DNA of 64,000 nucleotides, taken from assembly GCF_002113885.1 (NCBI RefSeq), contig NW_018404300.1:330652-394651 (forward strand), written 5' to 3'. A program made the position numbers and the translations under genes. The DNA is from Mizuhopecten yessoensis (lineage: Eukaryota). Numbering within the stretch: position 1 is the first letter of the stretch; each line of letters opens with the position of its first letter. The notes below the pieces were generated by a model. That model searched no databases. It was not told the DNA's origin and was given only the letters and a program-made list of their open reading frames with translations. Positions 14,183-44,539 of the stretch are shown here, in pieces.

Positions 14183-15475
14183 TGTACCTGTGTAGTTCAC
14201 TGACTCAGATAGCTGTGAGGATAGTGTACCTGTGTATTCACTGACTCCGATAGCTGTGAGGATAGTGTCCCTGTTTAGTCACTGACTCCGATAGCTGTGA
14301 GGATAGTGTTCCTGTGTAGTTCACTGACTCCGATAGCTGTGAGGATAGTGTTCCTGTGTAGTTCACTGACTCCGATAGCTGTGAGGATAGTGTCCCTGTT
14401 TAGTCACTGACTCCGATAGCTGTGAGGATAGTGTTCCTGTGTAGTTCACTGACTCCGATAGCTGTCAGGATAGTGTACCTGTGTAGTCACTGACTCCGCT
14501 AGCTGTGAGGATAGTGTACCTGTGTAGTCACTGGCTCAGATAGCTGTGAGGATAGTGTACCTGTGTATTCACTGACTCCGATAGCTGTGAGGATAGTGTT
14601 CCTGTGTAGTTCACTGACTCCGATAGCTGTGAGGATGGTGTACCTGTGTAGTCACTGACTCCGATAGCTCTGAGGATAGTCTACCTGTGTAGTTCACTGA
14701 CTCCGATAGCTCTGAGGATAGTGTACCTGTGTAGTTCACTGACTCCGATAGCTGTGAGGAAAGTGTACCTGTGTAGTTCACTGACTCAGATAGCTGTGAG
14801 GATAGTGTCCCTGTGTAGTTCACTGACTCTGATAGCTGTGAGGATAGTGTACCTGTGTAGTCTCTGACTCCGATAGCTCTGAGGATAGTGTACCTGTGTA
14901 GTTCACTGACTCTGATAGCTGTGATGATAGTGTACCTGTGTAGTTCACTGACTCCGATTGCTCTGAGGATAGTGTACCTGTGTAGTTCACTGACTCTGAT
15001 AGCTGTGATGATAGTGTACCTGTGTAGTTCACTGACTCCGATTGCTCTGAGGATAGTGTACCTGTGTAGTTCACTGACTTCGATAGCTGTGAGGAAAGTG
15101 TACCTGTGTAGTTCACTGACTCGGATAGCTGTGAGGATAGTGTACCTGTGTAGTCACTGGCTCAGATAGCTGTGAGGATAGTGTACCTGTGTAGTCTCTG
15201 ACTCAGATAGCTGTGAGGATAGTGTACCTGTGTAGTCTCTGACTCCGATAGCTCTGAGGATAGTGTACCTGTGTAGTCACTGACTCCGCTAGCTGTGAGG
15301 ATAGTGTACCTGTGTAGTCACTGGCTCAGATAGCTGTGAGGATAGTGTACCTGTGTAGTCTCTGACTCCGATAGCTCTGAGGATAGTGTACCTGTGTAGT
15401 TCACTGACTCCGATAGCTGTGAGGAAAGTGTACCTGTGTAGTTCACTGATTCTGATAGCTGTGAGGATAGTGTAC
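14183..15475. repeat. 41/42-bp minisatellite, ~31 copies
   Basis: Unit tgtacctgtgtagttcactgactccgatagctgtgaggatag. Confidence 0.97.
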
Positions 15476-18400
15476 GTGGCAGTAGAAATTAATTTGACTC
15501 CAGCATTAGGATTGAAGAGCAGTTAACTTGTTAGTGTTGGACCTCTGAAGTGGTCTCATAAATACATCTTTTCCATGTTTTGATAAAAATTCTTGTGAAA
15601 AATATCAAAGTTAGAATTAAAATGAGGAACCATTTAATCAATGAAATATTGATAGGTTTTCATCTACCAATGAAAGTCAAGGTGTAACTGGTATGTAGAT
15701 GTAATGTTGAGACTGTCGCAATTTGAACGAATGACAAAGAAATTTAGAACAAAATGCCATTACCAGTGAAAAATTGTCACCTGTTTTATAACATGTATAT
15801 ATATCTTACACAATCTAGTGTACAAAAAATCTCCATTCTTATAGGTATCTAATATACAATCTTATCAAGCATGTACAATTACTCACATATACTGAATATA
15901 GAGTATACAAATTAACCTGGAGGTATGTCTTGAAGAGTTTTACTAGTAGCCTGTGACCTGACCGATATTTTCAAAGTAAAAGTATTGAAAATTTTCACTA
16001 GAACTGACATAAAATCTACTAACTAGCTTCCCGCTCGTTTTACTCGGATGTGCTGTCGTGTTGTTGGGATGATCAAATACCGGTTTAAGAGTTAGTTACC
16101 CACCTTGTCAACTGATAGAAATTTGCAAAATCATCTTACTTTCTAATAATTAAGATTATCAAAGCGTAAGTTGTCAAATGTTTCATCTTTAGGTAACCAC
16201 TCTAAATTTCTGCACAGTTAAAGTATGGATAACTTTGGTAACTTACTGCCCTATTGCCAATATACAGACATATGTTTGATAAAGATAACCAGTATTTGTA
16301 CTGTAGTAGGGGTTCGTAATGACATTAATGCATGTTGAATGTTTTTACTTTCCCTGTACATCAGTGATTGTACCTTATACACATGTACAAGTACCAACTC
16401 TCATTTCTGTAACGGAGAGAAAAACTTTCATCTCGACAAGAGTTCAGAAAACCTGCCATTAAGCATATAGCCACTTTGAACTGTGATTGTTGAATGCCAA
16501 TGGAAATAACTTGCTCACAAAAAGGAATTTAGATTGGTGAGGTATTCCTCTTGAACTTCTTTTACAAAACACAAAAGACACTTCAGATTGCACTGACAAA
16601 TTTGACATTACAAGGGAACTTTGTTAGCTTTTTTAACTTTAAACAAATGACAGTTTATCAAAATTCATCATCAGTAGTGGGTTGAGACAAAATGTTCATT
16701 ATGCAGACTTTTATGTTGTCATGTGCCATATCTAACACTTTTCATTGCTAATTTTAAGGTAGTAATTTGTGGAGCATTTATCCAGTTATCGGGACGTGAT
16801 ATACACATGATACAGGATTTCCTATGTGATACATGTGTCACCAAAATACCATCATACCAATACATACCATTTTGGTATTACAGCCCTTCTCTATATGAAG
16901 TGTACTTGATTATGAAGTGTAAGGTTGTGTACTTGTTTATGAGGTGTGAGGTTGTGTATTAATTGCCAACCGGATCGCAGGCTTAGCTACAATCTAGCGA
17001 TAATGTCAAGTGCAAATTTAAACCATGAACCAGAGTGCTTTTTGTTAAGTATATGCTTAAAGTGTGTTTAGCTTGGTACAGAGATTTAAATAAGTTTGTA
17101 AGAACTTGTACTGTTAACTTCCTATTGTTCTGGGGTATATTTAAAGAAAAAAATGAAGATAGAGTTTTCATTGCTAATAATTCAGTATAAAATTTCTGAT
17201 ATATTCTTTTGAATTCAAGCCAAACGATTGTGAAATTAAAGAATTTGAGATGTATTGACTTACCATTTTGTATAAAGGTGTAGAATACTAGTGATTAGCT
17301 GACTCGATCGCTCTGAAGGTTTGCTGGTTTGTAAAACCAATATATTGATTTGGAAATTCAAGCTAACAACGTTTTCAATTGAAAAAACTTCTGAGAGATC
17401 GATCCTGGTACACAGATTTAACAGAACAATTTAGTTGGTGCTGTGTATCGGTGCCGGTGTGTAGGAGAAGAGAGGTGTATGAGGGTATATGAATACTTCG
17501 TGGTGTAGGTGACATACTTGGTGTTGGAGGGTAAACAGTAGGACCAGGGTACAGTTCCACCCGAGTTGACTGACCATTGAGGAGATATGGGTGAGTCGAG
17601 TGTCTGTACGCTGTCAGACGGGTAGTGTGTGTGTCTGTCCAAGTGTATACTTTTGTTGTGGTGACATAAACGTGTGTATAAACAGATCATAAATCAATCT
17701 ATTTGTCACCAAATACCACACAAGTGTCTCTCAAATCATCTGATAAGTCAGATCCTTCTATCTAAGTGAACTTGGTACTCTATAAAGCTAGCAGCCAAAC
17801 AATGGTTTAAGATTCCACTCAGCACTTAAACCATGTGGACAGTTTAAAGTAGTAGACATTTGTTCAGCATGTCCGACATACTGTAGAGCCTACAGGTCTG
17901 GGTGTTATTTTTCGCAGTGAATCTTAATAAAGACACTTGTATGTTGCTGAAGAAAATTATGAGGCCTTTAGAATAATTTTGTTGTTACAGAGCCAAAAAT
18001 GTTGCTCCTTTTAATTATGAAGAAAAAGTATACCTGCACTTGTTTTGAATTTTATCTTTATGATAAATATAACTTAGGGCAGATAATGAGGTACTGCAGT
18101 GAAACAGAATGGTGAAGGGACGGGACTGTTGTAGTCTGACACCTGAAGTAAAATAGTTATCCTCTTATAACCATAAGTGTCCCATTGTGTAACACACAAT
18201 AGAGAAAACACAATGTTTAATATCACACTGGTCATACAGAAGATTTATCAGGATTTGAGGGAGGTTGCCAGTCATTGTGAAGCTATAGCTTCAATGTTAA
18301 AAAAGGGTGTAGAAAGGTTTTACAAATGCAATTATTTAGGACACAACTTTTCAATATGTTTCCTCTTAGTTTTTGTTTATCTCAATTGCTGTGAATCAGA

Positions 18401-20721: not shown

Positions 20722-21054
20722 ATGGGTAATGCTAATAGTTCTGGAGGAGGTTTGGTTGTCGGAGAAGATCAGGATCTTCCTGAAATTTATGAAGTTTTGA
20801 CATACGAGGATGATGGTTTTGGTGTAGAGGAAGATGAAGACAGTCTAGAGGAAGAATACAAAGAATGTGACGACGAGGGAGACTCCGACGGAGAGGAGAG
20901 AGAGTCTAAAGGAGAAGAGAGAGAGGGAGAGGAAAAAGAAGGGGATACACAGGCTGATCAGGGAGAAAAACAGCTCCTAGAGGATCAGCAAGGAGCGAAA
21001 CAGAAACAACAGCTCACCAAGGAACAGCAAGATGTCAACAGCAGAAAGGATAAG
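20722..21054 (+). CDS. BIVM: BIVM-family protein, coding exon 1 (MGNANSS..., acidic)
   Basis: Acceptor ttacag|20716, ATG 20722, donor AAG|gtatgt, phase 0; joins the next exon in frame. Confidence 0.75.
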
Positions 21055-22437
21055 GTATGTTACTGTAGATAATACAGAGGCTGACGTTTCTTTCAGAGCT
21101 GAGTTCAGTAGTCTTTCAATGTAAACACAGATTATATATGAAGTCCAACCATTCATATACATATAACCTTGTCTGGACAATTACTAAAAATATGTAAATG
21201 TTAGATTCCAATGACAAGAAGGACATAAATAAACTGACAAATTGAGGATGGTGTACTGGAATCCCCAGTTTGGCGGATTGCAAATTTATGTTACATTTGT
21301 GAAGCTTCATTGTCACATTTACCTAAATAAATGGCAAACTTTCCAAATTTTTGAAATTTCCATGGGAGAGATTCTACATGCTCAAAATTAAAACATTAAT
21401 GAAATGTATATGCCCCCTAGGGACAAAATAACCCTTTATAAAGACATAATTTAAGTTGTTATTTCGGATGAACTCATTAGATCTTAGAAAATAGGAGCAG
21501 TTTAGCAAATTCACTGGTTGAAAATACTACATTTAAGAGTCAAATATCGGGAGACTCCCACCTAAAAAGGGAGGGTTGGCAAGTATGAAATGGAAAGAAG
21601 CCTTTTCATGTTGGGCTTAAAATGTAAAATTAAAGTTCATGGTAATTTAGTACTCAAAATTTCATTCAGGGATATTTATTTTGCAAGTTAAGCTCACCTG
21701 GAATGAAATAGGTTTATGTCATAGTGCCATGTCACAGCAGTCAAGTTTGTTTAAAACTTTTCATGACAACCTCAATAGAACTAGAAATCCAATAGTCATG
21801 ATATTTGGTTTTAAGCTTTCAGATGTAAGCCCTAGAATGGTGACATTTACTTTATACTTTATAGCTTGGTTTGGTGAGGGGTTCTCAACAGTATTTAAAT
21901 CAATTTACTTGACTTAAGGTCAAATGAATCAAAATGTAGCTAAATTGTCTGGATAAAAGGCTGTAAAATTTGTTCAAATAGCTGACCCTGACTTGTTTCA
22001 AGGTCATGGAATTAGACGTATTGACAATTCAAAATAACTTGTTCCGAAGTCATTGATTTGTTGTGGTGAAGAGGTGTCGGGATGATTTTGACTGATATCA
22101 AGACTATATATTTAAAAGGTGTTAAAAATTCAAACAACTTGTCAGGACCTTCAGAATTAAAGTTGATACAGGCCACTGGGGCCTATTGTCTACACCCAAC
22201 TTAATCTGATTTCTCACAGATATTACTCAATAATAGTAAACTACCTTAAGTCGATTGTAAGTAAGCAGGATTGCTTCTGATTTGTCTGACTGCACACTTA
22301 TTGGCAGGGAATGTTTTGTCCTATTGTAGTACACTTAGTGGCAAGGATTTGACAGAGGCTTTTGTTTCTTGTAATTCCTCATCACTACTGAGGTGTATGT
22401 CTGACATCTGTTACACCAGCTTTGTATGTATTTACAG

Positions 22438-22585
22438 GCTGTCAGTGGCTACATCTATTCTGGGATAGACCCCACCATTGTGTCACGTCTGATTCGTGAG
22501 GTGGAGGAACTACTCACACATGTGACTAACGAAAACTTCGAAGCGGCCCAGAATGCAGCACTCATATTGAAGGAGACCAATTTAG
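22438..22585 (+). CDS. BIVM: BIVM-family protein, coding exon 2
   Basis: tttacag|AVSGYIYSGIDPTIVSRLIREVEELL...KETNL, TAG|gtaggt; phase 0/1 matches exon 3. Confidence 0.75.
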
Positions 22586-22880
22586 GTAGGTACAACAGAC
22601 CAGCCTCGTTCTGGATAGACCACATACTAAAGGAGGCATGCATGAGGTAAGTATAACAGGCAGCCTCATTCTGGATAGACCAGGTACTGAAGGAGGCATG
22701 CATGAGGTAAGTATTACAGGTTACAGGTAGCCTCATTCTGGATAGACCAGGTACTAAAGGACACATCTATAGGTAGGTAAACAATGTCACTATTCTGGAT
22801 AGGACACACATTTTACTAATGGATGCAAATTTACATAGAGAAACAAGGTCAGCCTCGTTCTGGATAGGACTCATATCGCA
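22586..22880 (+). repeat. Degenerate ~60-bp repeat copying the exon end and donor site
   Basis: gcctc(g/a)ttctggatagac...aaggag...ag|gta(a/g)gt units, about 4-5 copies. Confidence 0.75.
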
Positions 22881-25132
22881 CTAATGCAAGTAAGTTTATA
22901 TTCACCTACAATCTATATTGGCACATAGCATTACAACAATGTTAAAAACAACAGTAGATTTTCTCAGAATTGGGAACCTTTTTTATTTTTAAATATGTCT
23001 GTTGTGACAATCTATGGCTTCATTTTTAGCTAACTTGGCCTTTGATTGGCTGAGACTTTTTTGATTTTATTCAAATATTCCTCTTCTGGCCCTGATCAAG
23101 TGTTTTTGTGTTTTGGACCAATTCATAATCAAAGATAGTCACCTGTCCTCTGATTGGAAGAGACTTATGTGACTAATTTTCAAATTTCATCACGTAAATG
23201 TTTAGTTTATTATATTGTACAGGTGTCCTTGTCATTTCCATAACCAGGTGTTTGTTTAATGTAAATTGCGTTGGTTGTGTCGTGCCACCAACAAGAAATT
23301 TGAAATGGCCACCATGGTCAAACAGTTGAATGATACAGGCCTGATGGGCCTCTTGTCGGTAAACAGGTCGTACAGGTTAACAGAAATACCTACATACCAC
23401 ATGTTTTGTGTATTGATCCCTTTGTATGGATTAATAGAATCTATCGCTACTGGTTGTGTAAGATAGAGAAATCTCAACCCGAGGACTAAGATTTTTTGTC
23501 CAGAACGAGGCTTGAAATAAAGGTAAACATGGACCCAAAACACATACAGGCAATTTGTTGATGGATTGTTGACGTGACGTCGTTGTATTGTTGAAGTGAC
23601 GTCATGCCATTGTTATGAATAGGGGAATCCCCCCGTCTCAACCCTAGGGCGGAGACAGATAAATCTAGCACCGGCAAAACGGGAGATAAATCTGTCAGGT
23701 GTGGGAGAAAAGTAAATAAACACTTGTTTTTGAAAGCTGATCAGAGATGGTTGCCAGTCGGACTACGTTTGTCATTGAGAATGACATCAAAGAGTAACTA
23801 TATTTAAATAATAGGATGTTGGCCAGGTGACAGTGAGTATTCTTCAAATGTTGGCCAGGTGAGAATCAACCACATTTTGGCAAAAAAGTATTAATTTTCC
23901 AGCTTCATGCAATTTGAAGACGACTTTTTCGGACATGTGGATATATTTGCCTGTCAAACTCCTTGTTACAGTCAAATACTACTGATTTGGTGAGTAGAGG
24001 AATACAAAGCTATAATAGTTGTAGCAGACAAAGGTGAAGTAACATGTTTTTGAGGAACTCTAATCAGAAACAAGCTTTATACTCTAGGCCACAAATGTAA
24101 GCACACCTTCAGGTTGTCACAGTTGCTGTGTATCAAGAGAATAGCTAAATGAATGAGCGTTTAAATGCTATTTAAAATACAGACATGAATTAGTAGGTAC
24201 ATTGTATGTGAACTGATGTGTGATACGATCCGATTATTTTTATAGAGTGATTGAACATCATTGTCTACAAATATAGTCTCTATACAAGCAGATAAAATCT
24301 GACATTTTGTTCAGCATTGTCAGCTTAACGAAATATGAATAAAATAATTCAGGGTATTAATTTCTCAAAATAATTTACTGATAATTACATTTCCTACTTT
24401 TGGTTGAAAGAGTTTGAATTTAACAAAGATATTTCTGTTTATTACTAATTGGACTCTTTTTGAAAGTAAGAATTAGAGACATAATATTTCATATTTATGG
24501 TAATGTTAGGCCTACCAAGTTTTGTTTGAATGGGACAGGAATCTTCTGGTAATTCTATCTGTTACCCCATACATTATAATAGGTTGATCTAAACCAAAGA
24601 TGGAACAATTCATTGTTAATTAATGGGGGTGGGTTAAATACGGATCCGGATGTTCAAATGGAGTTGTGTCTGTAGTCCATAGAAACAATGATAGGAGAAG
24701 CTATTTAATGCATGTTTTATTTAGATCACAAAAATTCAATTAAGAAATTTGATATCAAATATTTTAGGTATGATATATTTTTAGCAGATATTGAATTACA
24801 ATTTTATTAAATGAATTACTAAATATTGAAATAAGAGAATTGAATTCTTCAGAGTTTGAAAAATGTTTTGTAAAATGTTTTGTGCGGAAACAATATACGT
24901 ATTCAGATAGTTGATATATATTGTTTGAGAAGAACAATGTATTGCTATATATAAGTACCTGAATTGTACACCCCAAGTACACGTAGATATTGTTGGTTGG
25001 TCCTAGGAAGTCCCTTGTTGTCCACAGTTATAACATTGGGACCGGTGGACAACTGTCTGCTCGATAGTGGATGTTGTAAAACAAATGCAGGTTTCTGAAA
25101 AGATTTGGCGACAAAGCAGTTTACATAGAATG

Positions 25133-25496
25133 ATAGATGTACCAACACCCCATTGTGATGTTAGGACAGTAGTTCCCATAGATGTACCAGCAACCTCAGT
25201 GTGATGTTAGGACAGTAGTTCCCATAGATGTACCAACACCCCATTGTGATGTTAGGAAAGTAGTTCCCATAGATGTACCAGCAACCTCAGTGTGATGTTA
25301 GGACAGTAGTTCCCATAAATGTACCAACACCCCATTGTGATGTTAGGCAAGTAGTTCCCATAGATGTACCAACTCCCCATTGTGATGTTAGGAAAGTAGT
25401 TCCCATAGATGTACCAACCCCCCATTGTGATGTTAGGACAGAAGTTCCCACAGATGTACCAGCAACCTCAGTGTGATGTTAGGACAGTAGTTCCCA
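25133..25496. repeat. 45/46-bp minisatellite, ~8 copies
   Basis: Unit atagatgtaccaacaccccattgtgatgttaggacagtagttccc, with a 46-bp variant. Confidence 0.95.
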
Positions 25497-26416
25497 ACAT
25501 GTGGAAACACATTCTGTGGTTTTATACTGGTGTTGAAAACCTGACCTTCATCTCTGAAAGTGTTAGCGACTGCACAGGATTGTAAAACTACGTGGATGTC
25601 ACATGGAATATGTGGACGGATCGTTACTTTGTATCAATTTACTTGCAGTATATGGAACTGATCTCAGTATTAGTTTCGACCAGAATGAGGCCAGATAGCT
25701 CCAGCGTATGGTATCGGAGAGAGTGTGACAGCTGTCTGCTGTAGGGTGCTGAATCACAGAATGGAAGCGCATAATATGGATGTTTCTTTGGCAGTAGGTC
25801 TGCAAAGGAAAATAGTCTATTTCACTGAATTTCAGAATAAATGCTCATAAAAAATTATATGAATTTAAACTGTCTTAGCCTGAAATGAATAGGACAGCAG
25901 GAAGAATGTTTTGATATAAGGTGAAAAAACTAAAATCTGACTACAACCAGGTTGAATGGTTTTGTGTTCACGCAAAGAATAGAAATGGCTGGATTTCAAC
26001 TTCGTGGACGCCACAAAGGAGTCGGTAAATATGCAGGAAACATTGTCCTGGTCAGAATATTTCCTGTCCCAACTCTTTTCAAACTCATCATTTATCTAGT
26101 AAATATAGTCTTATCATTTACTGCATTAATAGCAATGGTTAGTGATTAACATTTTAAAGAATCCACTTAATCTCAGGAATACACATCAAAATAGATCTGC
26201 TTTTTATCCTGTTCCCCTCCTTTGGTCTTCATACACATGGTACTTACTCCATATCTATAACAGATCTACTAATATTAACCTGGAGGTTTATCTATAGGAG
26301 CCACCAGTATAGTTGTATCACCTCAGCTGTAATATAGACATTGATCATCACCACATACATGTAGGATGATTTGTGTAGTTTTGTGTAGTTTTTCATTAGG
26401 ACTTGTCTACTTACAG

Positions 26417-27319
26417 GGTCTTTAGCAGAAGGAATGAGCAAATCAATAGAGCGACAACAGAGATCCTACTACGATGGAAATATCCCTTCAAACAGGAAGT
26501 CAGGTTCTCGTCTTCAGGGTCCTAGAATTGATGTTGGGTCAAGAAAACAAGCTTATCGTCAGGGAAACACACCAAATAGGTCATCAGCTGATCTCACCAA
26601 ACTTCCACCAATCAATGGTTTCCGCAACGAAAAACCAGACAGTCGGGAGACGGGATCAACTGTTGTGTTTACAGATGGTGGCGGAGATACATCCCCCAGC
26701 AAAGGTCAGCATGGAGGTCATGTATCACGCCCTCCGTATAGTCCGACAAAAATGTCTGTTTCCAAGGACAAATCCCCTGCCAAGGATCAAAGGTCAGGGG
26801 TCACATGTAATGACATTGTGGCCATGACCTCAAACTATGTTCCAAGTGATGACAAGTCCACCATCAGAGATCAAAGGTCAAATATTGCATCATTGGTCAA
26901 TTCTGTCCAGCTTGAAGACAAGCCACAAGATGATGAAAGGTCAAAGTTCATCAGGGATCAAAGGTCAAGTATACCATCAATGATTCCTTCATTTCAAATG
27001 GATGCCAAAACAAAAGAGGAAAGGTCAAAGGTGAAGGAACAAAGGAAAAGTTTGATTCCATCATTCTCCAGTGAGGATAGGTCAAGGTCAAAGGATTCCA
27101 AATATAGCTCAAGTAACAATCATGGCGAGGAGGGATCGAAGGTTGAGGCGGTGAAGGCAGAGGTGGGAAAACCTGAACCAACAAAGACAGAGCCTAAAAC
27201 CTTGTCACCAAAGAAAACAGTTGAAGGGGTGGAACCAGAAGTTGGGGAGTTCAAGTCAGAAATAGCATGGGACGTTGATGTATCTGACATCACCCCTAGC
27301 AGGAAAATCAGGAAACCAG
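26417..27319 (+). CDS. BIVM: BIVM-family protein, coding exon 3 (disordered S/K/R-rich, ending EIAWDVD)
   Basis: ttacag|...CCAG|gtaatt; long ORF 26434-; phase 1/1. Confidence 0.88.
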
Positions 27320-27725
27320 GTAATTTATGGCAAAGTGACCAAGTTGTATGTGCATCTGTGCATGTAATTCAGGTGATAATATTAGCATAGCAAGTTGTTA
27401 CTATTTAGAAATATCTACATGCTAAAGCTTTTGGAAACTGTTTGGGTATTTCCATCTTATTCAATGTTTGAATAATCTGGGACGACCAATCGTGACATGA
27501 TGTCAAATTAACTATTGGCAGAATCCTAATATTTTCCGATTAATGTTCAGTGCCAAATAAGAAGTAAAATGATGTAGATTTAACGTTTTCCAGCTTTAGT
27601 CCTGTTTTAAGTAACTAGGTGCAGCAAACATTCTTTGTCTTGTGAAACAGTTATGTCTTCTTCTTCTTGACAAATGTAACATGTGTAAACTAATATGACT
27701 TCAATCAACATGTTTTGTTTTAAAG

Positions 27726-27837
27726 TGTTAACAAGTTCTCAAACGAAGGTAGACGACTCTAGCCCTTACATCCCTTCAAGTGTGAAAGTGACTGAGGAGC
27801 AGATCTGTGCTAGGAAAGTTTTTGATATGAAACGATG
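27726..27837 (+). CDS. BIVM: BIVM-family protein, coding exon 4
   Basis: ...EEQICARKVFDMKRW, similar to vertebrate BIVM RKVLDLRRW; phase 1/2. Confidence 0.9.
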
Positions 27838-28060
27838 GTATGTGTATTCATAAACTGATGGTGTATATATATCTATGGGTAATTAAATACAATTATTGAT
27901 ATCTGATGAGGTTACCATATTTTACTGCAAATAAGCCCCCACCCCTAGTGGAAAAAATAGACCAAATAGAGGAAGGGGGCTTAATTTTGAACATTAACTA
28001 AATATTGAAACATAAACACTGCACAGTAGCTAGACAGCAGTGTAAATAGCCTAACAAATG

Positions 28061-29503
28061 TGTCAGACCCGATTGTTTTGATTCAGACTGACTTGTAGGT
28101 TTTGGACATGAACAGTTTGTCAGTCCCAATTGTTTTGATTCAGACTGACTTGTAGGTTTTGGACATGAACAGTTGTCAGTCCCAATTGTTTTGATTCAGA
28201 CTGACTTGTAGGTTTTGGACATGAACAGTTGTCAGTCCCAATTGTTTTGATTCAGACTGACTTGTAGGTTTTGGACATGAACAGTTGTCAGTCCCAATTG
28301 TTTTGATTCAGACTGACTTGTAGGTTTTGGACATGAACAGTTGTCAGTCCCAATTGTTTTGATTCAGACTGACTTGTAGGTTTTGGACATGAACAGTTGT
28401 CAGTCCCAATTGTTTTGATTCAGACTGACTTGTAGGTTTTGGACATGAACAGTTGTCAGTCCCAATTGTTTTGATTCAGACTGACTTGTAGGTTTTGGAC
28501 ATGAACAGTTGTCAGTCCCAATTGTTTTGATTCAGACTGACTTGTAGGTTTTGGACATGAACAGTTGTCAGTCCCAATTGTTTTGATTCAGACTGACTTG
28601 TAGGTTTTGGACATGAACAGTTGTCAGTCCCAATTGTTTTGATTCAGACTGACTTGTAGGTTTTGGACATGAACAGTTGTCAGTCCCAATTGTTTTGATT
28701 CAGACTGACTTGTAGGTTTTGGACATGAACAGTTGTCAGTCCCAATTGTTTTGATTCAGACTGACTTGTAGGTTTTGGACATGAACAGTTGTCAGTCCCA
28801 ATTGTTTTGATTCAGACTGACTTGTAGGTTTTGGACATGAACAGTTGTCAGTCCCAATTGTTTTGATTCAGACTGACTTGTAGGTTTTGGACATGAACAG
28901 TTGTCAGTCCCAATTGTTTTGATTCAGACTGACTTGTAGGTTTTGGACATGAACAGTTGTCAGTCCCAATTGTTTTGATTCAGACTGACTTGTAGGTTTT
29001 GGACATGAACAGTTGTCAGTCCCAATTGTTTTGATTCAGACTGACTTGTAGGTTTTGGACATGAACAGTTGTCAGTCCCAATTGTTTTGATTCAGACTGA
29101 CTTGTAGGTTTTGGACATGAACAGTTGTCAGTCCCAATTGTTTTGATTCAGACTGACTTGTAGGTTTTGGACATGAACAGTTGTCAGTCCCAATTGTTTT
29201 GATTCAGACTGACTTGTAGGTTTTGGACATGAACAGTTGTCAGTCCCAATTGTTTTGATTCAGACTGACTTGTAGGTTTTGGACATGAACAGTTGTCAGT
29301 CCCAATTGTTTTGATTCAGACTGACTTGTAGGTTTTGGACATGAACAGTTGTCAGTCCCAATTGTTTTGATTCAGACTGACTTGTAGGTTTTGGACATGA
29401 ACAGTTGTCAGTCCCAATTGTTTTGATTCAGACTGACTTGTAGGTTTTGGACATGAACAGTTGTCAGTCCCAATTGTTTTGATTCAGACTGACTTGTAGG
29501 TTT
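28061..29503. repeat. 56-bp minisatellite, ~26 near-identical copies
   Basis: Unit gtcagtcccaattgttttgattcagactgacttgtaggttttggacatgaacagtt. Confidence 0.98.
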
Positions 29504-29647
29504 AATCGCTGCAGATCGGGGTCTTTTACTCACACTGCAGCAGCTTAATCTTATCAATTTTTAGAACTACTGTAACAAAAGCTTTACCATAAACAAAGCA
29601 CCAATCTGCATTGTTTCCAGTTTCAAAATTATTTTGGTTGTTTGTAG

Positions 29648-29743
29648 GGTGTGCGTGAGTCGACCACAGTACAGCAAGTCATGTGGAATTACCTCCCTTG
29701 TCTCCTGTTGGAACTTCCTATTTAGTTTACTGGGTAACGGAAG
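29648..29743 (+). CDS. BIVM: BIVM-family protein, coding exon 5
   Basis: [31 protein letters not shown], the BIVM signature; phase 2/2. Confidence 0.95.
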
Positions 29744-29768
29744 GTAAGGTGGTTATCTTTTGTATATT

Positions 29769-30598
29769 TGTAGCCGGGTTCCAATGCGAGGGTCATTAAA
29801 TATTACTCAACACCGGCGTTAGGGTTCACTTAGGTAGTTCATTACGGGTAACCCCGATAAACACATATCTACAAATGACAAATACAAACCATAAATACAC
29901 ATTCGTACGTACCTGCGCTCACAAATATAACATTCATTCATTTTAATATTAACTCAATTTAATAATAGTATTAAATTGCTATAGGCCTAGAAGAAAATAA
30001 TGGAATAGCTACTAATTATTTAGCAGTTACTTAGACAAGAATATATATATACGTTTTCTGGACATAGTGAAACTAAACTAGCGACTAAAATAGAGTCTCC
30101 AAAACCATGTGTTATCTAAAAGTTAATAATTTATGTTACAATTGTGTTAATTATAAATTGTACATAATATATAATATTTAAAACCTACATACAAACAATA
30201 CTCTCTCACTTATAACACTTACCGCTGTGTAACAGCAAAATGCAACTGTCTTGCTAATACCAGAGGGCTCAAGTAGACACGGCATATACATCCTTCTCCG
30301 TCGATGTATTTGGCCGGAGATGCCCAAATACGATACCCGACCCCAACTCTCTGGGACATGAATATAAGACACCACGTGACAAACACGACAGGTACACAGG
30401 TAACGCGCGTGAATAGGACATTAACACGGGTAACACGCATAACTCGCACAAATTGGACACGGAAGTATACGAAGTAAATGAATAGAGTAAATGATATACA
30501 AGATAAAGAATGTAAAAGATATACAGAAGAAGAATGAAAAGGAGAATTTATATACTTAAAACTTTAATTGGCCAAGCACTTAATAGGTGCCTGCCACA
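29769..30598. mobile_element. Solo LTR (Gypsy-like), 830 bp
   Basis: TGTAGCCGG...CCTGCCACA termini (TG..CA, imperfect IR) flanked by 4-bp TSD TATT. Confidence 0.75.
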
Positions 30599-30819
30599 TA
30601 TTATTCTCTATATAGGTTTCTTGATGAATAATGGTTTCATGAGTGCATTGTGCAGTAATTTAATATTTTCAAAAATATTCTGCCATTCATAGTGCATAGA
30701 GTGTATGTATGCATAAATTTGATGATATGTTTGTTTGTATTTCACTGACGTTACATATGTTTCAGAAAGTTTTAAGTTCTAATTTAGTGACGAGACATGT
30801 TTGTATGGTTGTGTTTCAG

Positions 30820-30924
30820 TCTAGCACCTATCACCCAGGAAGAGGCTCTCACCATTCTTGGGTTCAAACCACCATTTGACGAGATCAGATTTGGGCCGTT
30901 CACTGGAAACGCAACCTTAATGAC
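30820..30924 (+). CDS. BIVM: BIVM-family protein, coding exon 6
   Basis: [34 protein letters not shown]; phase 2/2. Confidence 0.95.
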
Positions 30925-31190
30925 GTAAGTTAACTGAAAAGAATCGTACTACATATTGTATCTTTTCTCTTTATTCAATATGAAAATAGTTGCTCTTGTA
31001 GTTATCTCCCCTGGCTCTGTAGTACTTGCTGGTACTTGGGTGATCCGATAGATTCACAATTTATAGTCATATGACACTGACTGGTAAAATATGGGGTTAT
31101 TTAACAGATTCACATAATTTCTCCATTTCAATGCTCTATTAAATAATAAGTATTATATAAGAAATGTTATGTGCTGTAGGTGTTAAATAG

Positions 31191-31322
31191 AGAGTAAGAA
31201 CCATTTAACTGGCTGGTTGTGCTGATGTGTAGGGAGAGTAAGAACCATTTAACAGGCTGGTTGTGCTGATGTGTAGGGAGAGTAAGAACCATTTAACTGG
31301 CTGGTTGTGCTGATGTGTAGGG
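31191..31322. repeat. 44-bp tandem repeat x3
   Basis: Unit agagtaagaaccatttaactggctggttgtgctgatgtgtaggg. Confidence 0.9.
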
Positions 31323-31572
31323 GCATAATATAATAAGGGATCCTTGTTTCTAATCATAACTTAATCATGGTTGGCTCTGTCTTTTGCTTACCTTCCCCAC
31401 TCACCCAGTATCTTCATGTCGTGTGAATTTCAGAGAACCTGATTGGAAAAATATATGCCAATGTCATGAAATTCCCCTTTCTGCTATGAATGATACATGA
31501 GCATTCAATATGTTGTTTTATCACAACAAAATGCAGAAGAGCTTTGCAATAAGATTTTATAGAAAATAGCAC

Positions 31573-31737
31573 CTGATCACGTGTAAGGCAGTCAGCTGAT
31601 CACGTGTAAGCCAGTCAGCTGATCACGTGTAAGGCAGTCAGCTGATCACGTGTAAACCAGTCAGCTGATCACGTGTAAGGCAGTCAGCTGATCACGTGTA
31701 AGCCAGTCAGCTGATCACGTGTAAGCCAGTCAGCTGA
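31573..31737. repeat. 23-bp tandem repeat x7 containing CACGTG and CAGCTG
   Basis: Unit ctgatcacgtgtaaggcagtcag. Confidence 0.95.
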
Positions 31738-32078
31738 AGGGGTATACTTGTGGGATGACAGTGTTGAGGATGATGCAGGTGGATAGGATATGATTGATAA
31801 TCTCTATAAATGTAATTCAGCTCAGAAATAACTGTTATATCATTTTATAAACTAAAAGATCTCCAGATTTGTTGGTTTATGCTTATAAGACCTGTTTGAA
31901 TGTATTTAAACTGCACAACCACTGGAGTTTTTTTTCTATATTTTTGTTTTTGTGTTAAAATGAATGACAACAACAAACTTCAAGATCCCTGGTTCATACA
32001 TTGGTCAAAATCTCTGCAGAGCTTACATCATTTTTCTCAAAATAAAATGTATTATATTGAACATGTATATTTTGTCAG

Positions 32079-32306
32079 ATGGTTCAAGAAGCTAAACGAC
32101 CACTTTAAAGTGCGTGGGCAGAGCTACTTTACATACAAACCTCACGGTAAGGACAAGACCTTTGGGATGACATCAGACATGGCCCTCCAGGCAATTAAAA
32201 AAGGACTGCAGGACCCCAACACAAGCTACATCTACCACTGCCAGAATCATTACTTCTGTCCAATCGGATTTGAGGATACACCCCTAAAAGCTGAGGAGGC
32301 TTACAG
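32079..32306 (+). CDS. BIVM: BIVM-family protein, coding exon 7
   Basis: [13 protein letters not shown]...YKPHGKDKT...[17 protein letters not shown]; phase 2/2. Confidence 0.95.
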
Positions 32307-33029
32307 GTAATGAACACTTTTGTACCCTAGGTATATACAGTATATACCACTACTGATACTTTGTCCCAAGGATTTTAAGGATACACCCCTCAATGCTGTG
32401 GAGGCTTACAGGTAATGAACACTTTTGTACCCTAGGTATATATATACCACTCCCAATACTTTGTCCCAAGGATTTTAAGGATACACCCCTCAATGCTGAG
32501 GAGGCTTACAGGTAATGAACACTTTTGTACCCTAGGTATATACAGTATATACCACTCCCGATACTTTGTCCCAAGGATTTTAAGGATACACCCCTCAAAG
32601 CTGAGGAGGCTTACAGGTAATGAACACTTTTGTACCCTAGGTATATATACCACTCCCGATACTTTGTCCCAAGGATTTTTAAGGATACACCCCTCAAAGC
32701 TGAGGAGGCTTACAGGTAATGAACACTTTTGTACCCTAGGCACATGTATATATATACCACTCCCAATACTTTTGTCCCAAGGATTTTAAGGATACACCCC
32801 TCAATGCTGAGGAGGCTTACAGGTAATGAACACTTTTGTACCCTAGCTATATATATACCACTCCTGATACTTTTGTCCCAAGGATTTTAAGGATACACCC
32901 CTCAAAGCTGAGGAGGCTTACAGGTAATGAACACTTTTGTACCCTAGGTATATATATATACCACTACTGATACTTTTGTCCCAAGGATTTTAAGGATACA
33001 CCCCTCAATGCTGAGGAGGCTTACAGGTA
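32266..33029 (+). repeat. ~100-bp tandem repeat spanning the exon 7 end and donor site (8 copies of gcttacag|gta)
   Basis: aggatacacccct..gctgaggaggcttacaggtaatgaacacttttgtaccctag repeated. Confidence 0.95.
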
Positions 33030-33682
33030 TGGTACATCGGTACTCCAGTTATACCTGTATATAGCTATCACCACAATCAGTTCTGAGGGGTTCGAGGGTA
33101 CAACTGTTACAGCTTTGATATATGTGGCAGTTGGTTATGAGGCATTCCGTTTTACTTATGTCAAATATGGTTTGAGGATATGCACCCAAGTCTAAGGAGG
33201 CAACTATTAATAGGTCACTGTCAGAACCAGTGCCACATCAGTTATCTGATTGTACTAAATATACCATATTCATTTACCAGAGTTTGATCTCCAGTTTTCC
33301 TAAACTGGGAATGATCCAGAAAGTGTCAGAGATTAATGCTATCTTCTCACACAATCCGACCTCAAACGTTGGTTCTAGTTAACCAGTGGTTAGGAAAACA
33401 TTTAAAATATGAATATAACTAAATAAAGACGTCCAGAAAGATATCATTTCCTTGCTGTAGATCAGTTGCGACAAATCAGATCAATGTGTTATTGTGTTTT
33501 GAGGATTAATTTTGCTTTGTTTAGCATTTGTTTCTTCAACAATTAAATTTTTTCACTAACCACTGGTTAAAGTTAACCAACTTTGAACAACTGGAGTCTG
33601 ATGTCCTGAAAAACACAGAAGGATGATAATGTTACGTGTCTTGTGATATTGGTATTTATGTTGGCTGTGTTAACTATTTCAG

Positions 33683-33766
33683 TGGACCCCTTGCCCAGGA
33701 GGACGTAGAAACACATATTCTGATTGGAGACTGTGCAATCAAACACCCAAGTATACACTGCAAAAA
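33683..33766 (+). CDS. BIVM: BIVM-family protein, coding exon 8
   Basis: GPLAQEDVETHILIGDCAIKHPSIHCK; phase 2/2. Confidence 0.93.
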
Positions 33767-34386
33767 GTAAGTTTGTAAATGAGTTACAAAATGATAAAAG
33801 GAATACTGATTGACTGATTATTCTTTGTCTGACAAAGGTGTACCTCACACCTAGTCATTGAAATGTGAGTACAGTGGATTAAAATGTATTAAAAACCTCT
33901 TACCTATTTAATGAAATGACATGCAAAGTCACATTGGAATCACACTTGTTATTTGAATATTTGTGAGCTATAATTATGCTTCCCCCACCAAAGTTAGTGA
34001 GGTACTGGATTCAGGTTGTCTGTGTGTCTGTTCGTCCTTAGATGGAATCTTTTCTGGACAGCTCCTAACTTTTCATTGATATTTCTTGAAACTTTTGTGG
34101 AAGCTATATGCCCCCTTAGAAAACTGATAGCCAAGTCTTCTTTATTCTGATCTACATCTACATTATGGCCAGAACAATGGTCCTGAAGCTTCTTTACATA
34201 CTTTTACGGAATTGCTACATATTGTCAACATTTGGTATAACTACATTTCTGTTGACCTTGCTTTGGCAATTTTATGGGGGAGCTTTTATATTTATAGTTG
34301 CGTGTAGTTGTGTGTTGAATTCACAGTTAGTCAATGGTAAATAATTATGTAGAAGTGGTCACAATATTGTAATTATTTTGTTGTAG

Positions 34387-34849
34387 ATGGGAGGATATTT
34401 CCATCGACCTGAATTGTGTCAATCCTGAGTACCTTAACATTCGTCGCCTGCAAGAAGGACTGCAGAAACGCAAGGCCAAAAAGCCTGGTGGTAATCTTCA
34501 TTGCATCATGGCATTTCGCAAAAACAATTTTCAGTCTATTCACAGAACTCATATCCCTGTGTTTGGGGGTGGGGCTAAAACAAGAACACGATCAACATCA
34601 AACCAAGCACTAAATGTTTCACCGGGCACACACGTTTCTACAACAGGGACCCCCATTATGCCAATGTCTGCTGACACAACTGCCAAACTTGGTAATAATA
34701 ATGAAATCTCAATGGGAGTGAATCATCATTCTGAAGTGTTGCCTAGCAACGGATTTGGTGACGGTGAGCATCCACAGGTAGGAGATGTAAAGCAGACAGA
34801 GGAGGAGGAGGAGAATATGTGTTCAGAGGATGAAGAGGATGATGAATAA
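34387..34849 (+). CDS. BIVM: BIVM-family protein, last coding exon
   Basis: WEDISIDLNCVNPEYLNIRRL...GGNLHCIMAF...EDEEDDE*; total spliced CDS 2472 nt. Confidence 0.93.
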
Positions 34850-41407: not shown

Positions 41408-42967
41408 CTACTGTTGCTTCTTTTGACTGTCACCTTTGAAGAAACACAAACAAATTGTTAATATGAGAGAACCACAAGCAAGCACTGCCACCAAGCCTAT
41501 CAACATGTAATACTCCATCAAAGACTGACCAAGAGTGATGACATCCACACAGTTATGGTCTAAGGACGTAACCTGTACACTTTTCAGACAAACAAGATAT
41601 GCTGTGTCCGGGTGTAAATCATGTATAGTGTAAACACCGACATTACCAGTGACTGACATCTCCCTCCAAACATTCTGCCCACCAAATGTTCGGTATGCTA
41701 AAACCATCTCCCTTGATTTAGAATTAACTTCTCCTTGCGGTGGTATCCAGCCTACTTTGATATATGTCTGTCCTACAAAACTTACATGCAGTTCAGGAGA
41801 CCATGAATGATCTTTCTCTGGTGTCTTATCATCCTTTACCGGTTTCCTTATATCGGAACATACAAACTGATCCGAGTCAAGCATGTCCCATGATTTTCCA
41901 GCTAGGTGAACGGGTGTTGCACAAACTGGGATGTATTTTTCCAAATTTACATCAATGTATTTCAGTAAGTATAGACGTAAATCATACAAGTCTTTTACCC
42001 ATTGTAGGTGGCAGTCACAGTGAAATGGATTACCCCCTAACAGAAACACATCATGAGGGTAAAGCTCATTCTCATCAACTTCCTCACTCAAATGTGTAAT
42101 ATTGTTGAATGACATGTCCAACCATTCAAGTGTTGGTAAATAGCTCGGCAGATTTACAAAGCTATTAAATGCTAACGACAAATATCGCAGATTATGCAAA
42201 TTTTTAAGACTTCTTTGATTAAATCCTGAAATAGAATTATTGCTTAAATCTAGAACTTCAACTACGTTCAATTCCTTTACAAAAGACACATTTGATACTC
42301 TGTTGTTTGAAAGAGATATGTGTTTCAGTTTTGGAAATCTTTTGAAAGTATTATCATCTATATTTCTAATCCGATTCCCAGAAAGGTCTAAAATTTCAAG
42401 ATTTAAAAATTCAAAAGTGGTGTTTGACCTTTTTCTTTGCTCACAATGAAGACCCCCATTGCTGAGATCAATGTAATTATCCCTTAAATAAAGTTCTCGC
42501 AAATGACTTCCACTCAGATGACATAGACTTGTAATCATATTAATGCTTAGATGTAATACTACTAATTTTTCAGGAAGAAAATTTGGAATTTCTGTCAATT
42601 TGTTTTGTTTGAAATACAAGTATTCCAAATTAGAAAATGCTTTCAAGAAAGTTGAATGAAGATCAACAACAGCATTGTTACTTAAATCCAATATTGTGAC
42701 ATTTATAAATAAAACATTTTCTCCTTCAAGTCTGTTTAAGTGTGTAATCCAGTTCCCACTAATGTTTAGCTTTGTTGCAATGAGTGGTATTGATTCGGGG
42801 AAAGTTGTGAGTTCTCGGTTTGTACAGTCCACACTGAAGACTCCAGAAGCATCTATTCCACACCGACATGAACTAGGACAGTCTACTGATGATGCCTGTT
42901 GAATTGTCAACCCTGTCAGAGTAATCAACGCAATTAGCCACCATCCATCACAGGGTTTCTTTTTCAT
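41408..42967 (-). CDS. LRR and fibronectin type III domain type I transmembrane protein (519 aa)
   Basis: Signal peptide, LRRNT (CPSSCRC..VDC), about 9 LxxLxLxxN repeats, LRRCT (NPFHCDC..C), FN3-like (VGW..YTIHDLHPDTAYLVCL), TM helix, 9-aa tail; acceptor ttcag directly before the ATG; AATAAA at 41329-41334. Confidence 0.93.
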   Translation of the reverse strand: MKKKPCDGWWLIALITLTGLTIQQASSVDCPSSCRCGIDASGVFSVDCTNRELTTFPESIPLIATKLNISGNWITHLNRLEGENVLFINVTILDLSNNAVVDLHSTFLKAFSNLEYLYFKQNKLTEIPNFLPEKLVVLHLSINMITSLCHLSGSHLRELYLRDNYIDLSNGGLHCEQRKRSNTTFEFLNLEILDLSGNRIRNIDDNTFKRFPKLKHISLSNNRVSNVSFVKELNVVEVLDLSNNSISGFNQRSLKNLHNLRYLSLAFNSFVNLPSYLPTLEWLDMSFNNITHLSEEVDENELYPHDVFLLGGNPFHCDCHLQWVKDLYDLRLYLLKYIDVNLEKYIPVCATPVHLAGKSWDMLDSDQFVCSDIRKPVKDDKTPEKDHSWSPELHVSFVGQTYIKVGWIPPQGEVNSKSREMVLAYRTFGGQNVWREMSVTGNVGVYTIHDLHPDTAYLVCLKSVQVTSLDHNCVDVITLGQSLMEYYMLIGLVAVLACGSLILTICLCFFKGDSQKKQQ

Positions 42968-44059
42968 CTGAATAGAATAGAAACGATTGATTATATCCTT
43001 TATTAACTGTTTGGAGGAATTCCTGTTAAATTTGCAAATATCAATCTTGGTGATATGAGAGTGCTGTTTTATTTTTTCAATTGAATGAAGAAGGTAAATG
43101 TAATTTTCAACATAGGTTGTCTTACAACTTTTTGCTTAATATGACGAACACCATCAATGCAAAGTAGAGTAACTGCAAGTATAAAGACTATAGATGCTCA
43201 CGGAAATGTAATTTCTCGTCTAATTGAATATATTTTTTGATTAACTTACCATTTAACAGTTTATAGTGGGTTAATTGAATTAACAGATTAAACTGGGATA
43301 TCTGTATATATTTCAAGCATGAGGCTTGCCTATTATATCATGAAGGCAGGTCTAATGGTTCACAAGATATAAATGAAAACGTTGATGAACAATGCCATAA
43401 ATTACGTTCACAAGCACTTCAAAAGTAACAATTAAATCCATTAAAAAATCTCAACATCATAACGGGACAGGAATCTTTCTAACGTTTAAAAACTTTACAA
43501 AGGACAAACCCTTTTGCTGGTAAAAATAATAAACAATAACTGAGGGATAGGCTCCAGTTTATCGCTGACAGCATGTTGATATCAAACACGTGCTTTATAT
43601 AAACAATAAACAACAAACCACGTGGTAGAATTATTTTGGGAGTTCAATCATCCGGGCATTTCAATTCGACACAAAAGGGGTTTTGTGACGTCTGTAAAAG
43701 GAGAATTAATGTTACTGTATCGAATCTGAGTGTATATGATTTTTTTTCAACTAAACCTTGCATTTACAAGATGATTGATGAATCATCCTACCTTTCTAGA
43801 GCCCAGTGTAGTCTGTCAACAATACATGTAGGACATCAGATTGGAAAGGGATATTTTGGGAGAAATTATATTTTCAATTTCAGTAAATGAAATTACAGTA
43901 AAATGGCCATTTCAATTATTGTAGTGTATTTTTGATCTGTTTTAATAATAAAATTGTTCTCTCAAACAAAATTTCAGATTTATTAGACAAAATCAATATT
44001 TTCAATGATATTGTATTCTAATGAATAAAAATACCAATGATTACTCCCTCATATCCCCT

Positions 44060-44250
44060 TGGCTGGCCAATGAAATCGTTAATGGCGAGAAAGTCACGTG
44101 ACAAGTTATCGTGGCGTGCTAGCTGCTTCGAAAGGCAGCACTCTGCGGTGCGTCTTTGTCGGAAGCGGACGTTGTGATGGCCGTACGACCGTTAGTACGA
44201 GTCGTTTGTCAACGAAAACATCTCGAATGATTCCTTGTTAACCATTCTTG
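44060..44250. promoter_or_regulatory. INTS6 core promoter / 5'UTR, head-to-head with the LRR gene
   Basis: CCAAT (44067), aatggcg, GTCACGTGAC (44093-44102), CGGAAG; CpG-rich relative to flanks. Confidence 0.6.
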
Positions 44251-44253
44251 AAA

Positions 44254-44364
44254 ATGACGATAATTCTCTTTCTAGTCGACACGAGTGCGTCGATGAATCA
44301 GCGTACATATTTGGGGACATCTTTGATTGACATTTCGAAAGCTTCCGTAGAGTCTTTCATGAAG
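44254..44364 (+). CDS. INTS6: Integrator complex subunit 6, exon 1 (vWA start)
   Basis: MTIILFLVDTSASMNQRTYLGTSLIDISKASVESFMK|gtaaat. Confidence 0.96.
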
Positions 44365-44461
44365 GTAAATTGCGCAGATAAGGTCGGTTTTGTTTTCATT
44401 TATCTATTTAGATGCAACAATCGCGCATACTTTATTTTAATTGCCGCAATTTTTTGTTTAG

Positions 44462-44539
44462 ATCAGGTCTAGAGATGCGAACAGCAGATGGGATAGATAC
44501 ATGCTGCTGACGTTAGAGGACCCGCCGTCTAATATAAAG
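44462..44539 (+). CDS. INTS6: INTS6 exon 2
   Basis: IRSRDANSRWDRYMLLTLEDPPSNIK; phase 0/0. Confidence 0.95.

Follow-up and report, generated by a model that had tools for sequence, protein, structure and literature searches.

The 64-kb stretch of scallop DNA analysed here (the window, which contains no N) carries an intact scallop-type (bivalve) orthologue of BIVM, and structural modelling of a close orthologue suggests that the conserved core of the encoded protein, about 240 residues specified by exons between 27726 and 34849, is probably a papain-like cysteine enzyme domain. We likewise think it probable that this core is a catalytically active, putative papain-type cysteine enzyme. The papain-like nature of BIVM has been known since 2023, when Ozhelvaci and Steczkiewicz (J Biol Chem 2023; PMC10318531) listed human BIVM (Q86UB2) as papain-like, in cluster I, group 2, marked 'NEW', and recorded in the paper and its supplement that the catalytic triad and oxyanion-hole residue are retained and that the function is unknown. 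An earlier note on this DNA, which read a papain-type catalytic motif set from the sequence, had surmised that the fold link might already be on record, and for the human protein it is.

The gene comprises nine coding exons on the forward strand (20722-34849; 823 codons, 2472 nt; Table 1), with AG/GT at every splice border, compatible phases at all junctions and no internal stop. Positions 29648 and 33766, between which the earlier note had placed the motif set, are genuine exon borders, and the Gln/Cys, His and Asp motifs that it had reported lie in that order on three forward-strand exons with canonical AG/GT borders; the codons that it had assigned to Gln (29667), Cys (29682), His (32248) and Asp (33729) are all correctly located. 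The junction between the His and Asp exons is formed by a split Ser codon (ag/t). A tandem array begins within the final 38 nt of the His exon, whose end and GT donor it repeats onward into the intron, such that the 20-nt junction occurs in seven exact copies where chance would give none; six repeated decoy donor sites lie at 32401-32932. Rfam returned no match over the whole window.

The closest relative found is a protein of another scallop, Ylistrum balloti (XP_060083156, here P0002), whose record does not carry the BIVM name. Aligned by tblastn, the two follow the same order exon by exon, and identity to the Ylistrum protein is 93-97% in each of the five core exons that run from the Cys exon through to the Asp exon. 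Matches that do carry the name come from Haliotis, Crassostrea, Patella, Lingula, Antedon and Acanthaster, and the gene is, on this sequence comparison, a member of the BIVM family. Searching a word-index protein resource with the last exon gave a single match, P0001, a 182-aa fragment of the last exon, from a tool that works within a length window. Human BIVM belongs to the same family but is shorter, at 503 residues (PMC10318531 table), the difference arising from the N-terminal low-complexity region of the scallop protein.

Table 1. Features of the BIVM gene in the window, with window coordinates; P0002 is the Ylistrum balloti protein and counts refer to 58 representative homologues.
Feature	Position	Strand	Basis and remarks
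Coding exon 1	20722..21054	+	tblastn with P0002; GT donor, phase 0; 62% identity to P0002; starts Met-Gly-Asn-Ala-Asn-Ser, then an acidic low-complexity stretch
Coding exon 2	22438..22585	+	81% identity to P0002; AG/GT
Coding exon 3	26417..27319	+	77% identity to P0002; borders per tblastn with P0002; product N-terminal, long, of low complexity, poorly conserved, without Pfam match
Coding exon 4	27726..27837	+	Start of conserved core, RKVFDMKR-W; conserved Arg and Trp alignment columns
Gln/Cys-motif core exon	29648..29743	+	94% identity to P0002
Gln codon (CAG)	29667..29669	+	Putative oxyanion-hole residue, five residues upstream of Cys; Gln 58/58
Cys codon (TGT)	29682..29684	+	Putative nucleophile; Cys 57/58, Ser 1/58
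Core exon between Cys exon and His exon	30820..30924	+	97% identity to P0002
His-motif core exon	32079..32306	+	NHYFCPIGF; 97% identity to P0002
His codon (CAT)	32248..32250	+	Putative general base, within Asn-His-Tyr; His 58/58
Tandem array	32269..33029	+	Period about 105, 7.4 copies
Core exon with HILIGDC	33683..33766	+	THILIGDCAIKHPSIHCK; 93% identity to P0002
Asp codon (GAC)	33729..33731	+	Putative third triad residue; column acidic 58/58
Last coding exon	34387..34849	+	79% identity to P0002; TAA stop; core end (WEDISIDLN...GGNLHCIMAF), then disordered tail with acidic end
Second invariant Asp, W-x-D-I-x-x-D-L	34406..34408	+	58/58; in helix 191-199 of the model

To gauge conservation we used 58 representatives of the eukaryotic homologues, one per cluster at 50% identity, 20 of which were looked up by name and proved to come from molluscs, a brachiopod, echinoderms, amphioxus, a fish, a trypanosomatid and a heterolobosean. 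The order Gln, Cys, His, acidic residue is kept across them. Conservation among orthologues, which the earlier note had put forward as a check, is close to complete for the three leading residues (Gln 58/58, Cys 57/58, His 58/58), the one departure being a Ser in place of Cys in the homologue P0090. Their surroundings are equally constrained: Gly directly follows the Cys position in all 58 representatives, and in the Asn-His-Tyr triplet only Asn varies (57/58, against 58/58 for both His and Tyr). Because the same residues are retained in 58 representatives, the pattern is not a matter of chance. The claim of an intact Cys-His-Asp triad holds, at the level of residues, for the near-invariant Cys and His and for this gene, which has Asp at the third position, 35 residues C-terminal of the His, but not for the family as a whole, where that column is Asp in 31 representatives and Glu in 27. 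Glu is found in the named fish and trypanosomatid sequences, so that the scallop protein differs here from the one fish representative checked by name.

All queries taken from the window were single exons, and the first AlphaFold2 model was made from the core of a natural orthologue, P0002:490-745, and not from the window's own protein. It is confidently predicted (pLDDT 93.1, pTM 0.88), with pLDDT falling beyond about residue 240, and in it a helix (31-44) opens with the Cys, a strand (143-154) opens with the His, and the Asp lies just past the end of the next strand (170-177). A second model, of the core of a trypanosomatid homologue with Glu at the third triad position, reached pLDDT 91.6 and gave the same leading Foldseek neighbours with weaker scores. 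The 50 PDB matches listed for the P0002 core are nearly all named proteins of the papain fold; they include Nostoc phytochelatin synthase, UfSP1/2, staphopain, ZUP1, the C39 domain of ComA, calpain, falcipain and IdeS. Scores are those of remote relatives: the best E-value is 1.1e-3 for the P0002 core and 0.067 for the trypanosomatid core, with none below 0.001, and for both models the TM-scores are 0.4-0.6 at about 10% identity. The top PDB match of the P0002 core is annotated 'P210 CD lyase', a term for which a literature search found nothing. In a viral library, the best matches were AvrRpt2-like papain proteases and mycobacteriophage Lysin A. On the strength of these models the BIVM core is almost certainly a papain-like alpha/beta domain.

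The earlier note had likened the core to phytochelatin synthase and C39 peptidases, and both appear among the PDB neighbours of the papain-like P0002 model. Profile searches did not carry the likeness further. No Pfam family scored above threshold on any BIVM exon or any of the 58 cores. Phytochelatin gave no match to single exons at E up to 10, nor, at E up to 1, did its profile (PF05023) match a single one of the 58 cores; none of these cores reached the curated score of the C39 and C39-like families (PF03412, PF13529), and BtrH_N was likewise without a match among exons and cores. Four of the 58 cores, all of trypanosomatid type, matched Peptidase_C39_2 with scores of 13.1-15.5 bits, where the cut-off is 24, and these sub-threshold matches span profile positions 11-38, which is exactly the Gln/Cys motif. 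Sequence searches of the PDB, run with a family profile as well as with the His and last exons, yielded chance-level matches to antibody light chains and unrelated proteins only. Since there is no Pfam Phytochelatin match and Peptidase_C39_2 matches only below threshold, the resemblance to these families, as modelled, is at the level of fold only: the fold neighbours that the earlier note had anticipated are there, whereas the Pfam thresholds of both families are missed.

The Nostoc phytochelatin synthase Alr0975 (PDB 6th5, 2bu3, 2btw; family C83) is among the closest solved structures for both models, ranking first for the trypanosomatid core and second for the P0002 core, there at the E-value of the top match (TM 0.50 by query and 0.59 by target, probability 1.0). 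Across both models its matches have TM-scores of 0.40-0.60, rmsd of 5.4-8.6 Å and E-values from 1e-3 to 0.8, values that speak for a shared fold without demonstrating a common family. Alr0975 has the papain fold and forms a thioacyl intermediate on its Cys; it differs from BIVM in that identity is about 10-15%, the third residue of BIVM is Asp or Glu, BIVM has additional helices that separate its Cys helix from the sheet, and nothing links BIVM to glutathione. The Gln-Cys and His-acid spacings of phytochelatin synthase also differ from those of BIVM, the latter being shorter than in BIVM. The neighbours ranked next after the top group in both models, UfSP1/UfSP2 (PDB 2z84, 3oqc, 5ejj, 5xda), are eukaryotic cytosolic papain-fold proteases that cleave after the C-terminal Gly of a ubiquitin-like modifier; they align with a TM-score by query of 0.36-0.39 and show no sequence similarity to BIVM. 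The PDB matches also include the peptidase domain of ComA (C39, bacteriocin leader peptidases), with a TM-score by target of 0.54-0.57, and AvrRpt2-like phage proteins (C70) lead the viral list, but BIVM, unlike the C39/C70/BtrH_N group, is eukaryotic and has no transporter or carrier-protein context. When 185,579 bacterial and archaeal genomes were scanned for patterns taken from the family alignment, 32 pattern matches came up, none of which was confirmed as a relative, at a sensitivity limited by the two peptide patterns used.

In the mechanism we propose, the thiolate of the Cys, which opens the central helix, would attack a carbonyl, with the His on the facing beta-sheet acting as base, the Asp (Glu in many lineages) orienting the His, and the Gln five residues ahead of the Cys contributing the oxyanion hole. 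A thioacyl-enzyme intermediate would form in the course of the reaction, whose most likely outcome would be hydrolysis of a specific amide bond by a peptidase, isopeptidase or amidase, although we put the chances that BIVM is specifically a hydrolase at about even. We infer catalytic competence, hydrolase over transferase chemistry and the kind of substrate. As to the last, an acidic substrate would fit the published positive charge of the BIVM pocket.

The same fold and triad could serve a transferase, in which an amine or some other acceptor would take over the acyl group of the thioacyl intermediate, and we consider this unlikely, if still worth weighing. Phytochelatin synthase, which heads the named solved neighbours of both models, is a gamma-Glu-Cys transpeptidase, and BtrH is an acyl-carrier-protein-dependent acyltransferase. 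In the 2023 survey, the butirosin acyltransferase domain BtrH_N is the closest sequence-profile relative of BIVM (PMC10318531). Yet the neighbours ranked next (UfSP, staphopain, ZUP1, C39, calpain, falcipain) are hydrolases, the Pfam Phytochelatin and BtrH_N matches that might have tied BIVM to either transferase are absent from the exons and the 58 cores, and BIVM yielded no recognisable features for binding a donor or an acceptor. Moreover, a TM-score of 0.5-0.6 is too remote for reaction specificity to be transferred from one protein to the other.

It is improbable, in our estimate, that BIVM is instead a pseudoenzyme, a papain-fold binding or scaffold module at the centriole or cilium that keeps these residues for structure or ligand recognition. 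Known papain-fold pseudo-members typically lack the Cys or the His. BIVM retains Gln, Cys, His and an acidic residue across the 58 representatives, which is the pattern of a working active site, and the representatives named span animals, a trypanosomatid and a heterolobosean; the Ser of P0090 is the exception that would suit a pseudoenzyme. That reading also draws on several papain-fold proteins of the cilium and centriole that are inactive, CC2D2A/B among them (PMC10318531), and on the literature searched, which holds no report of enzymatic activity for any BIVM and in which the 2023 survey is the sole paper to touch the point.

Last, the notion that the motif is an immunoglobulin-variable-like element, with an Ig-type fold or as its relic, is vanishingly improbable: the only PDB sequence matches to the His-motif stretch are V regions of antibody light chains, over their YYCQQHY..P.TF segment (E 0.024 with the His exon, 0.2-0.5 with the family profile), but they cover only some 30 residues at chance-level E-values, no Ig domain occurs among the 50 PDB matches listed for either model, no Ig Pfam family matches, and the model is an alpha/beta papain fold in which the named stretch is the strand bearing the catalytic His. 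Identity as an Ig variable domain is refuted at the level of fold by this confident alpha/beta model, in which the 'immunoglobulin-like variable motif' behind the name BIVM is the predicted catalytic His strand.

Outside the core, the Met-Gly-Asn start is a point of difference from human BIVM. It recurs in 16 of 50 Met-initiated homologues of at least 400 residues and, being conserved in invertebrates, is on sequence grounds likely an N-myristoylation signal. Among nine long homologues the sole domain fusion is a BIVM-ERCC5 read-through protein (XPG_N plus XPG_I); ERCC5 is a DNA-repair gene that adjoins BIVM and is sometimes joined with it in a read-through transcript. BIVM is widespread among cilium-building eukaryotes. 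Its published phylogenetic profile is ciliary, which suggests a cilium or basal-body setting, and localisation to basal bodies has been published for one mouse cell line only.

Taken together these features allow a more specific proposal, which we regard as a long shot, namely that BIVM, N-myristoylated in many invertebrates, is a cysteine (iso)peptidase or transpeptidase of ancient origin and associated with the cilium, which would trim or remodel the acidic tail of some axonemal or centriolar protein. The proposal is motivated by an active site kept alike in animals, a trypanosomatid and a heterolobosean, by the positively charged pocket and the ciliary profile, and by the fact that one of the nearest solved folds is that of an enzyme that removes a C-terminal glycine in its first step. 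Myristoylation would then provide a membrane anchor or routing to the cilium, and the substrate might be, for example, the tubulin C-terminal tail or its amino-acid side-chain modification. A specific role as a tubulin deglycylase is weakened by a mismatch in distribution since trypanosomatids have BIVM but reportedly lack tubulin glycylation, whereas flies glycylate tubulin and are not known to have BIVM.

What the window adds is modest: an intact mollusc orthologue, residue-level conservation counts across distant eukaryotes, the alternation of Asp and Glu at the third triad residue, the equation of the Ig-like motif with the predicted His strand, and a likely myristoylation signal in invertebrates. 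A useful precedent is ACTMAP (C19orf54), an orphan eukaryotic papain-like protein of cluster I, like BIVM, that was subsequently proven to be a highly specific actin maturation protease (PMC10318531), although no ACTMAP structure is among the 50 PDB matches listed for either model. It indicates that an orphan of this kind can turn out to be a protease with a single substrate and an important role in the cell, and a probably active papain-type core makes BIVM a tractable orphan too, as its putative nucleophile is known and can be mutated and activity-based probes exist for this chemistry.

With only the His exon as query (window:32080-32304:+), an exhaustive protein search returned 218 relatives, the top one being P0002, an uncharacterised protein of 830 aa from the scallop Ylistrum balloti that is 97% identical across the exon. 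Matches named BIVM came from Haliotis, Crassostrea, Patella, Lingula, Antedon, Acanthaster, Saccoglossus and one fish, and Novymonas, a trypanosomatid, and Pharyngomonas, a heterolobosean, also have homologues; judging by sequence, the window gene is a BIVM orthologue. Its nine coding exons (table) amount to 2472 nt with a single, terminal stop, AG/GT at all borders and compatible phases, in a window free of N. Exons were used singly in the window searches, and across junctions only phase arithmetic and individual split codons were computed. Identity to P0002 is 93-97% in the five core exons, which run from the Cys exon to the Asp exon, and 62-83% in the N-terminal part and tail. The DNA accordingly comes from a bivalve related closely to scallops and not from human.

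Coding exons of BIVM in the window, each supported by tblastn with P0002, splice sites and phase
Feature	Position	Strand	Content
Coding exon 1	20722-21054	+	
Coding exon 2	22438-22585	+	
Coding exon 3	26417-27319	+	
Coding exon 4	27726-27837	+	
Exon 5	29648-29743	+	Gln/Cys motif
Exon 6	30820-30924	+	
Exon 7	32079-32306	+	His motif
Exon 8	33683-33766	+	encodes ...THILIGDCAIKHPSIHCK (Asp motif)
Exon 9	34387-34849	+	

The three catalytic motifs of the earlier note lie where it described them, on three plus strand exons, with all four codons correctly read: CAG for Gln at 29667, TGT for Cys at 29682, CAT for His at 32248 and GAC for Asp at 33729. Conservation was counted in an alignment of 58 core domains (A1), one representative per 50%-identity cluster. 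Gln and the Gly following Cys are each found in 58/58, Cys in 57/58, and Asn-His-Tyr in 57, 58 and 58, respectively. Gln, Cys and His are thus near-invariant. The third triad position, following ILIG, is always acidic, with Asp in 31 representatives and Glu in 27; among sequences looked up by name, those of molluscs, a brachiopod, echinoderms and amphioxus have Asp, and those of the fish and the trypanosomatid have Glu. A second Asp (W-x-D-I-x-x-D-L; window codon 34406) is invariant in A1. The only representative in which Ser replaces the catalytic Cys is P0090:295-551 (QYPSSSGIST); this variant might use Ser as nucleophile, might have lost activity, or might reflect an error in the sequence.

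The fold was modelled with AlphaFold2 on A1, using the natural sequence of the orthologue's core (P0002:490-745) as target, which gave a mean pLDDT of 93.1 and a pTM of 0.88. In this model Cys opens helix 31-44, His opens strand 143-154 and Asp follows strand 170-177, a predicted placement that is the classical papain arrangement. The AlphaFold and Foldseek check proposed earlier came out in favour of a papain fold: a Foldseek search against the PDB gave nothing with E < 0.001, and the best 50 matches are nearly all named papain-fold proteins. Rank 1 is PDB 22oc, 'P210 CD lyase', at E 1.1e-3, the same E as the first phytochelatin synthase chain; next is Nostoc phytochelatin synthase Alr0975, with probability 1.0 and a TM-score of 0.50 by query and 0.59 by target, followed by UfSP1/2, staphopain, ZUP1, the ComA C39 domain, calpains, falcipains and IdeS. 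Among viral predicted structures the best matches are AvrRpt2-like papain proteases and mycobacteriophage Lysin A. For robustness, a Glu-bearing trypanosomatid-type core (P0113:404-666) was modelled on its own alignment, A2 (pLDDT 91.6), and its leading neighbours are phytochelatin synthase, 22oc, UfSP and falcipain, though weaker (E >= 0.067). At the level of the predicted fold, the BIVM core is papain-like. Entry 22oc, released in March 2026, ranks first or second in both Foldseek runs, and our literature search found no paper on 'P210 CD lyase'; if it is truly a lyase, a broader chemistry would have to be considered for this branch of the papain fold.

Pfam scans of single exons and the 58 cores, in a Pfam version that excludes PF28452.1, gave no model above threshold, Phytochelatin included; the sequence therefore does not demonstrate that BIVM belongs to the phytochelatin synthase family or to C39. 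The sole sequence-level support is four sub-threshold matches to Peptidase_C39_2, located exactly over the Gln/Cys motif. P0001, a fragment of the BIVM last exon, carries the precomputed label PF28452.1, and a Pfam family over part of BIVM may now exist.

The stretch at 32230-32275 (+) has as its sole PDB sequence matches antibody light-chain V regions (YYCQQHY..P.TF; E 0.024) and is evidently the 'immunoglobulin-like variable motif' behind the gene's name. We rejected an immunoglobulin-like reading, as the match is local and at chance level and the motif coincides in the model with the strand bearing the predicted catalytic His. The His exon also contains the start of a tandem array (32269-33029, +; period ~105, 7.4 copies, 91% match) whose repeat unit includes the terminal 38 nt of the exon and the GT donor. 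The 20-nt junction GAGGCTTACAG/GTAATGAAC occurs in seven exact copies, the genuine one at 32296 and six intronic decoys at 32401-32932 that are possible alternative donor sites.

At its start (20722-20739, +) the window gene encodes Met-Gly-Asn-Ala-Asn-Ser. In a set of 50 Met-initiated homologues of at least 400 aa, the N-terminus is Met-Gly in 18 and Met-Gly-Asn in 16 (including P0002, P0003, P0005, P0016, P0018, P0022, P0025 and P0056), the named taxa being molluscs, a brachiopod, echinoderms and amphioxus; this start is absent in the named fish sequence and the trypanosomatid-type sequences. Such a start fits the usual N-myristoylation consensus and looks like a conserved putative myristoylation signal.

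In the vertebrate-type P0034 (1676 aa) the BIVM core (residues 190-445) is fused to XPG_N and XPG_I, making this protein a BIVM-ERCC5 read-through product. Neither of two scanned ORFs downstream of BIVM (41411-43135, 44242-44469) has an XPG domain, so BIVM and ERCC5 may not be linked in this bivalve. The first, on the minus strand, is unbroken for 575 codons with LRR_8 (E 1e-26) and fibronectin type III domains, and has the appearance of an intronless gene lying between BIVM and the plus strand gene that comes next. The second (+), beginning MTIILFLVDTSASMNQ..., has a sub-threshold VWA_2 match at its start (E 2.9e-5), is similar to the N-terminal end of Integrator subunit 6 and probably represents exon 1 of the gene downstream. 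Two short-repeat arrays, at 14614-15523 upstream of BIVM and at 25030-25580 in its second intron, can be read as repeated peptides in several frames (minus-strand ...LHRYTILTAIRVSE... and plus-strand ...VPIDVPTPHCDVR...) and are probably minisatellites.

Ozhelvaci and Steczkiewicz (J Biol Chem 2023, PMC10318531) recognised seven human proteins as papain-like for the first time, and human BIVM is one of them. The papain-like proposal of the earlier note, which had itself suspected a prior report, is thus correct but already published. We found no report on BIVM enzymatic activity in the literature. The best-supported reading of sequence and model is an active Cys-His-Asp/Glu enzyme, in which the Gln five residues ahead of Cys would be the oxyanion-hole residue and the reaction would pass through a thioacyl intermediate on Cys. 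Hydrolysis of a specific amide bond is favoured, because most structural neighbours are hydrolases and because ACTMAP, a relative that was formerly an orphan and belongs to the same cluster of the 2023 survey, proved to be a single-substrate protease (PMC10318531). A transferase reaction of the kind catalysed by phytochelatin synthase or BtrH must be taken seriously as an alternative. Conservation of the residues makes a pseudoenzyme unlikely.
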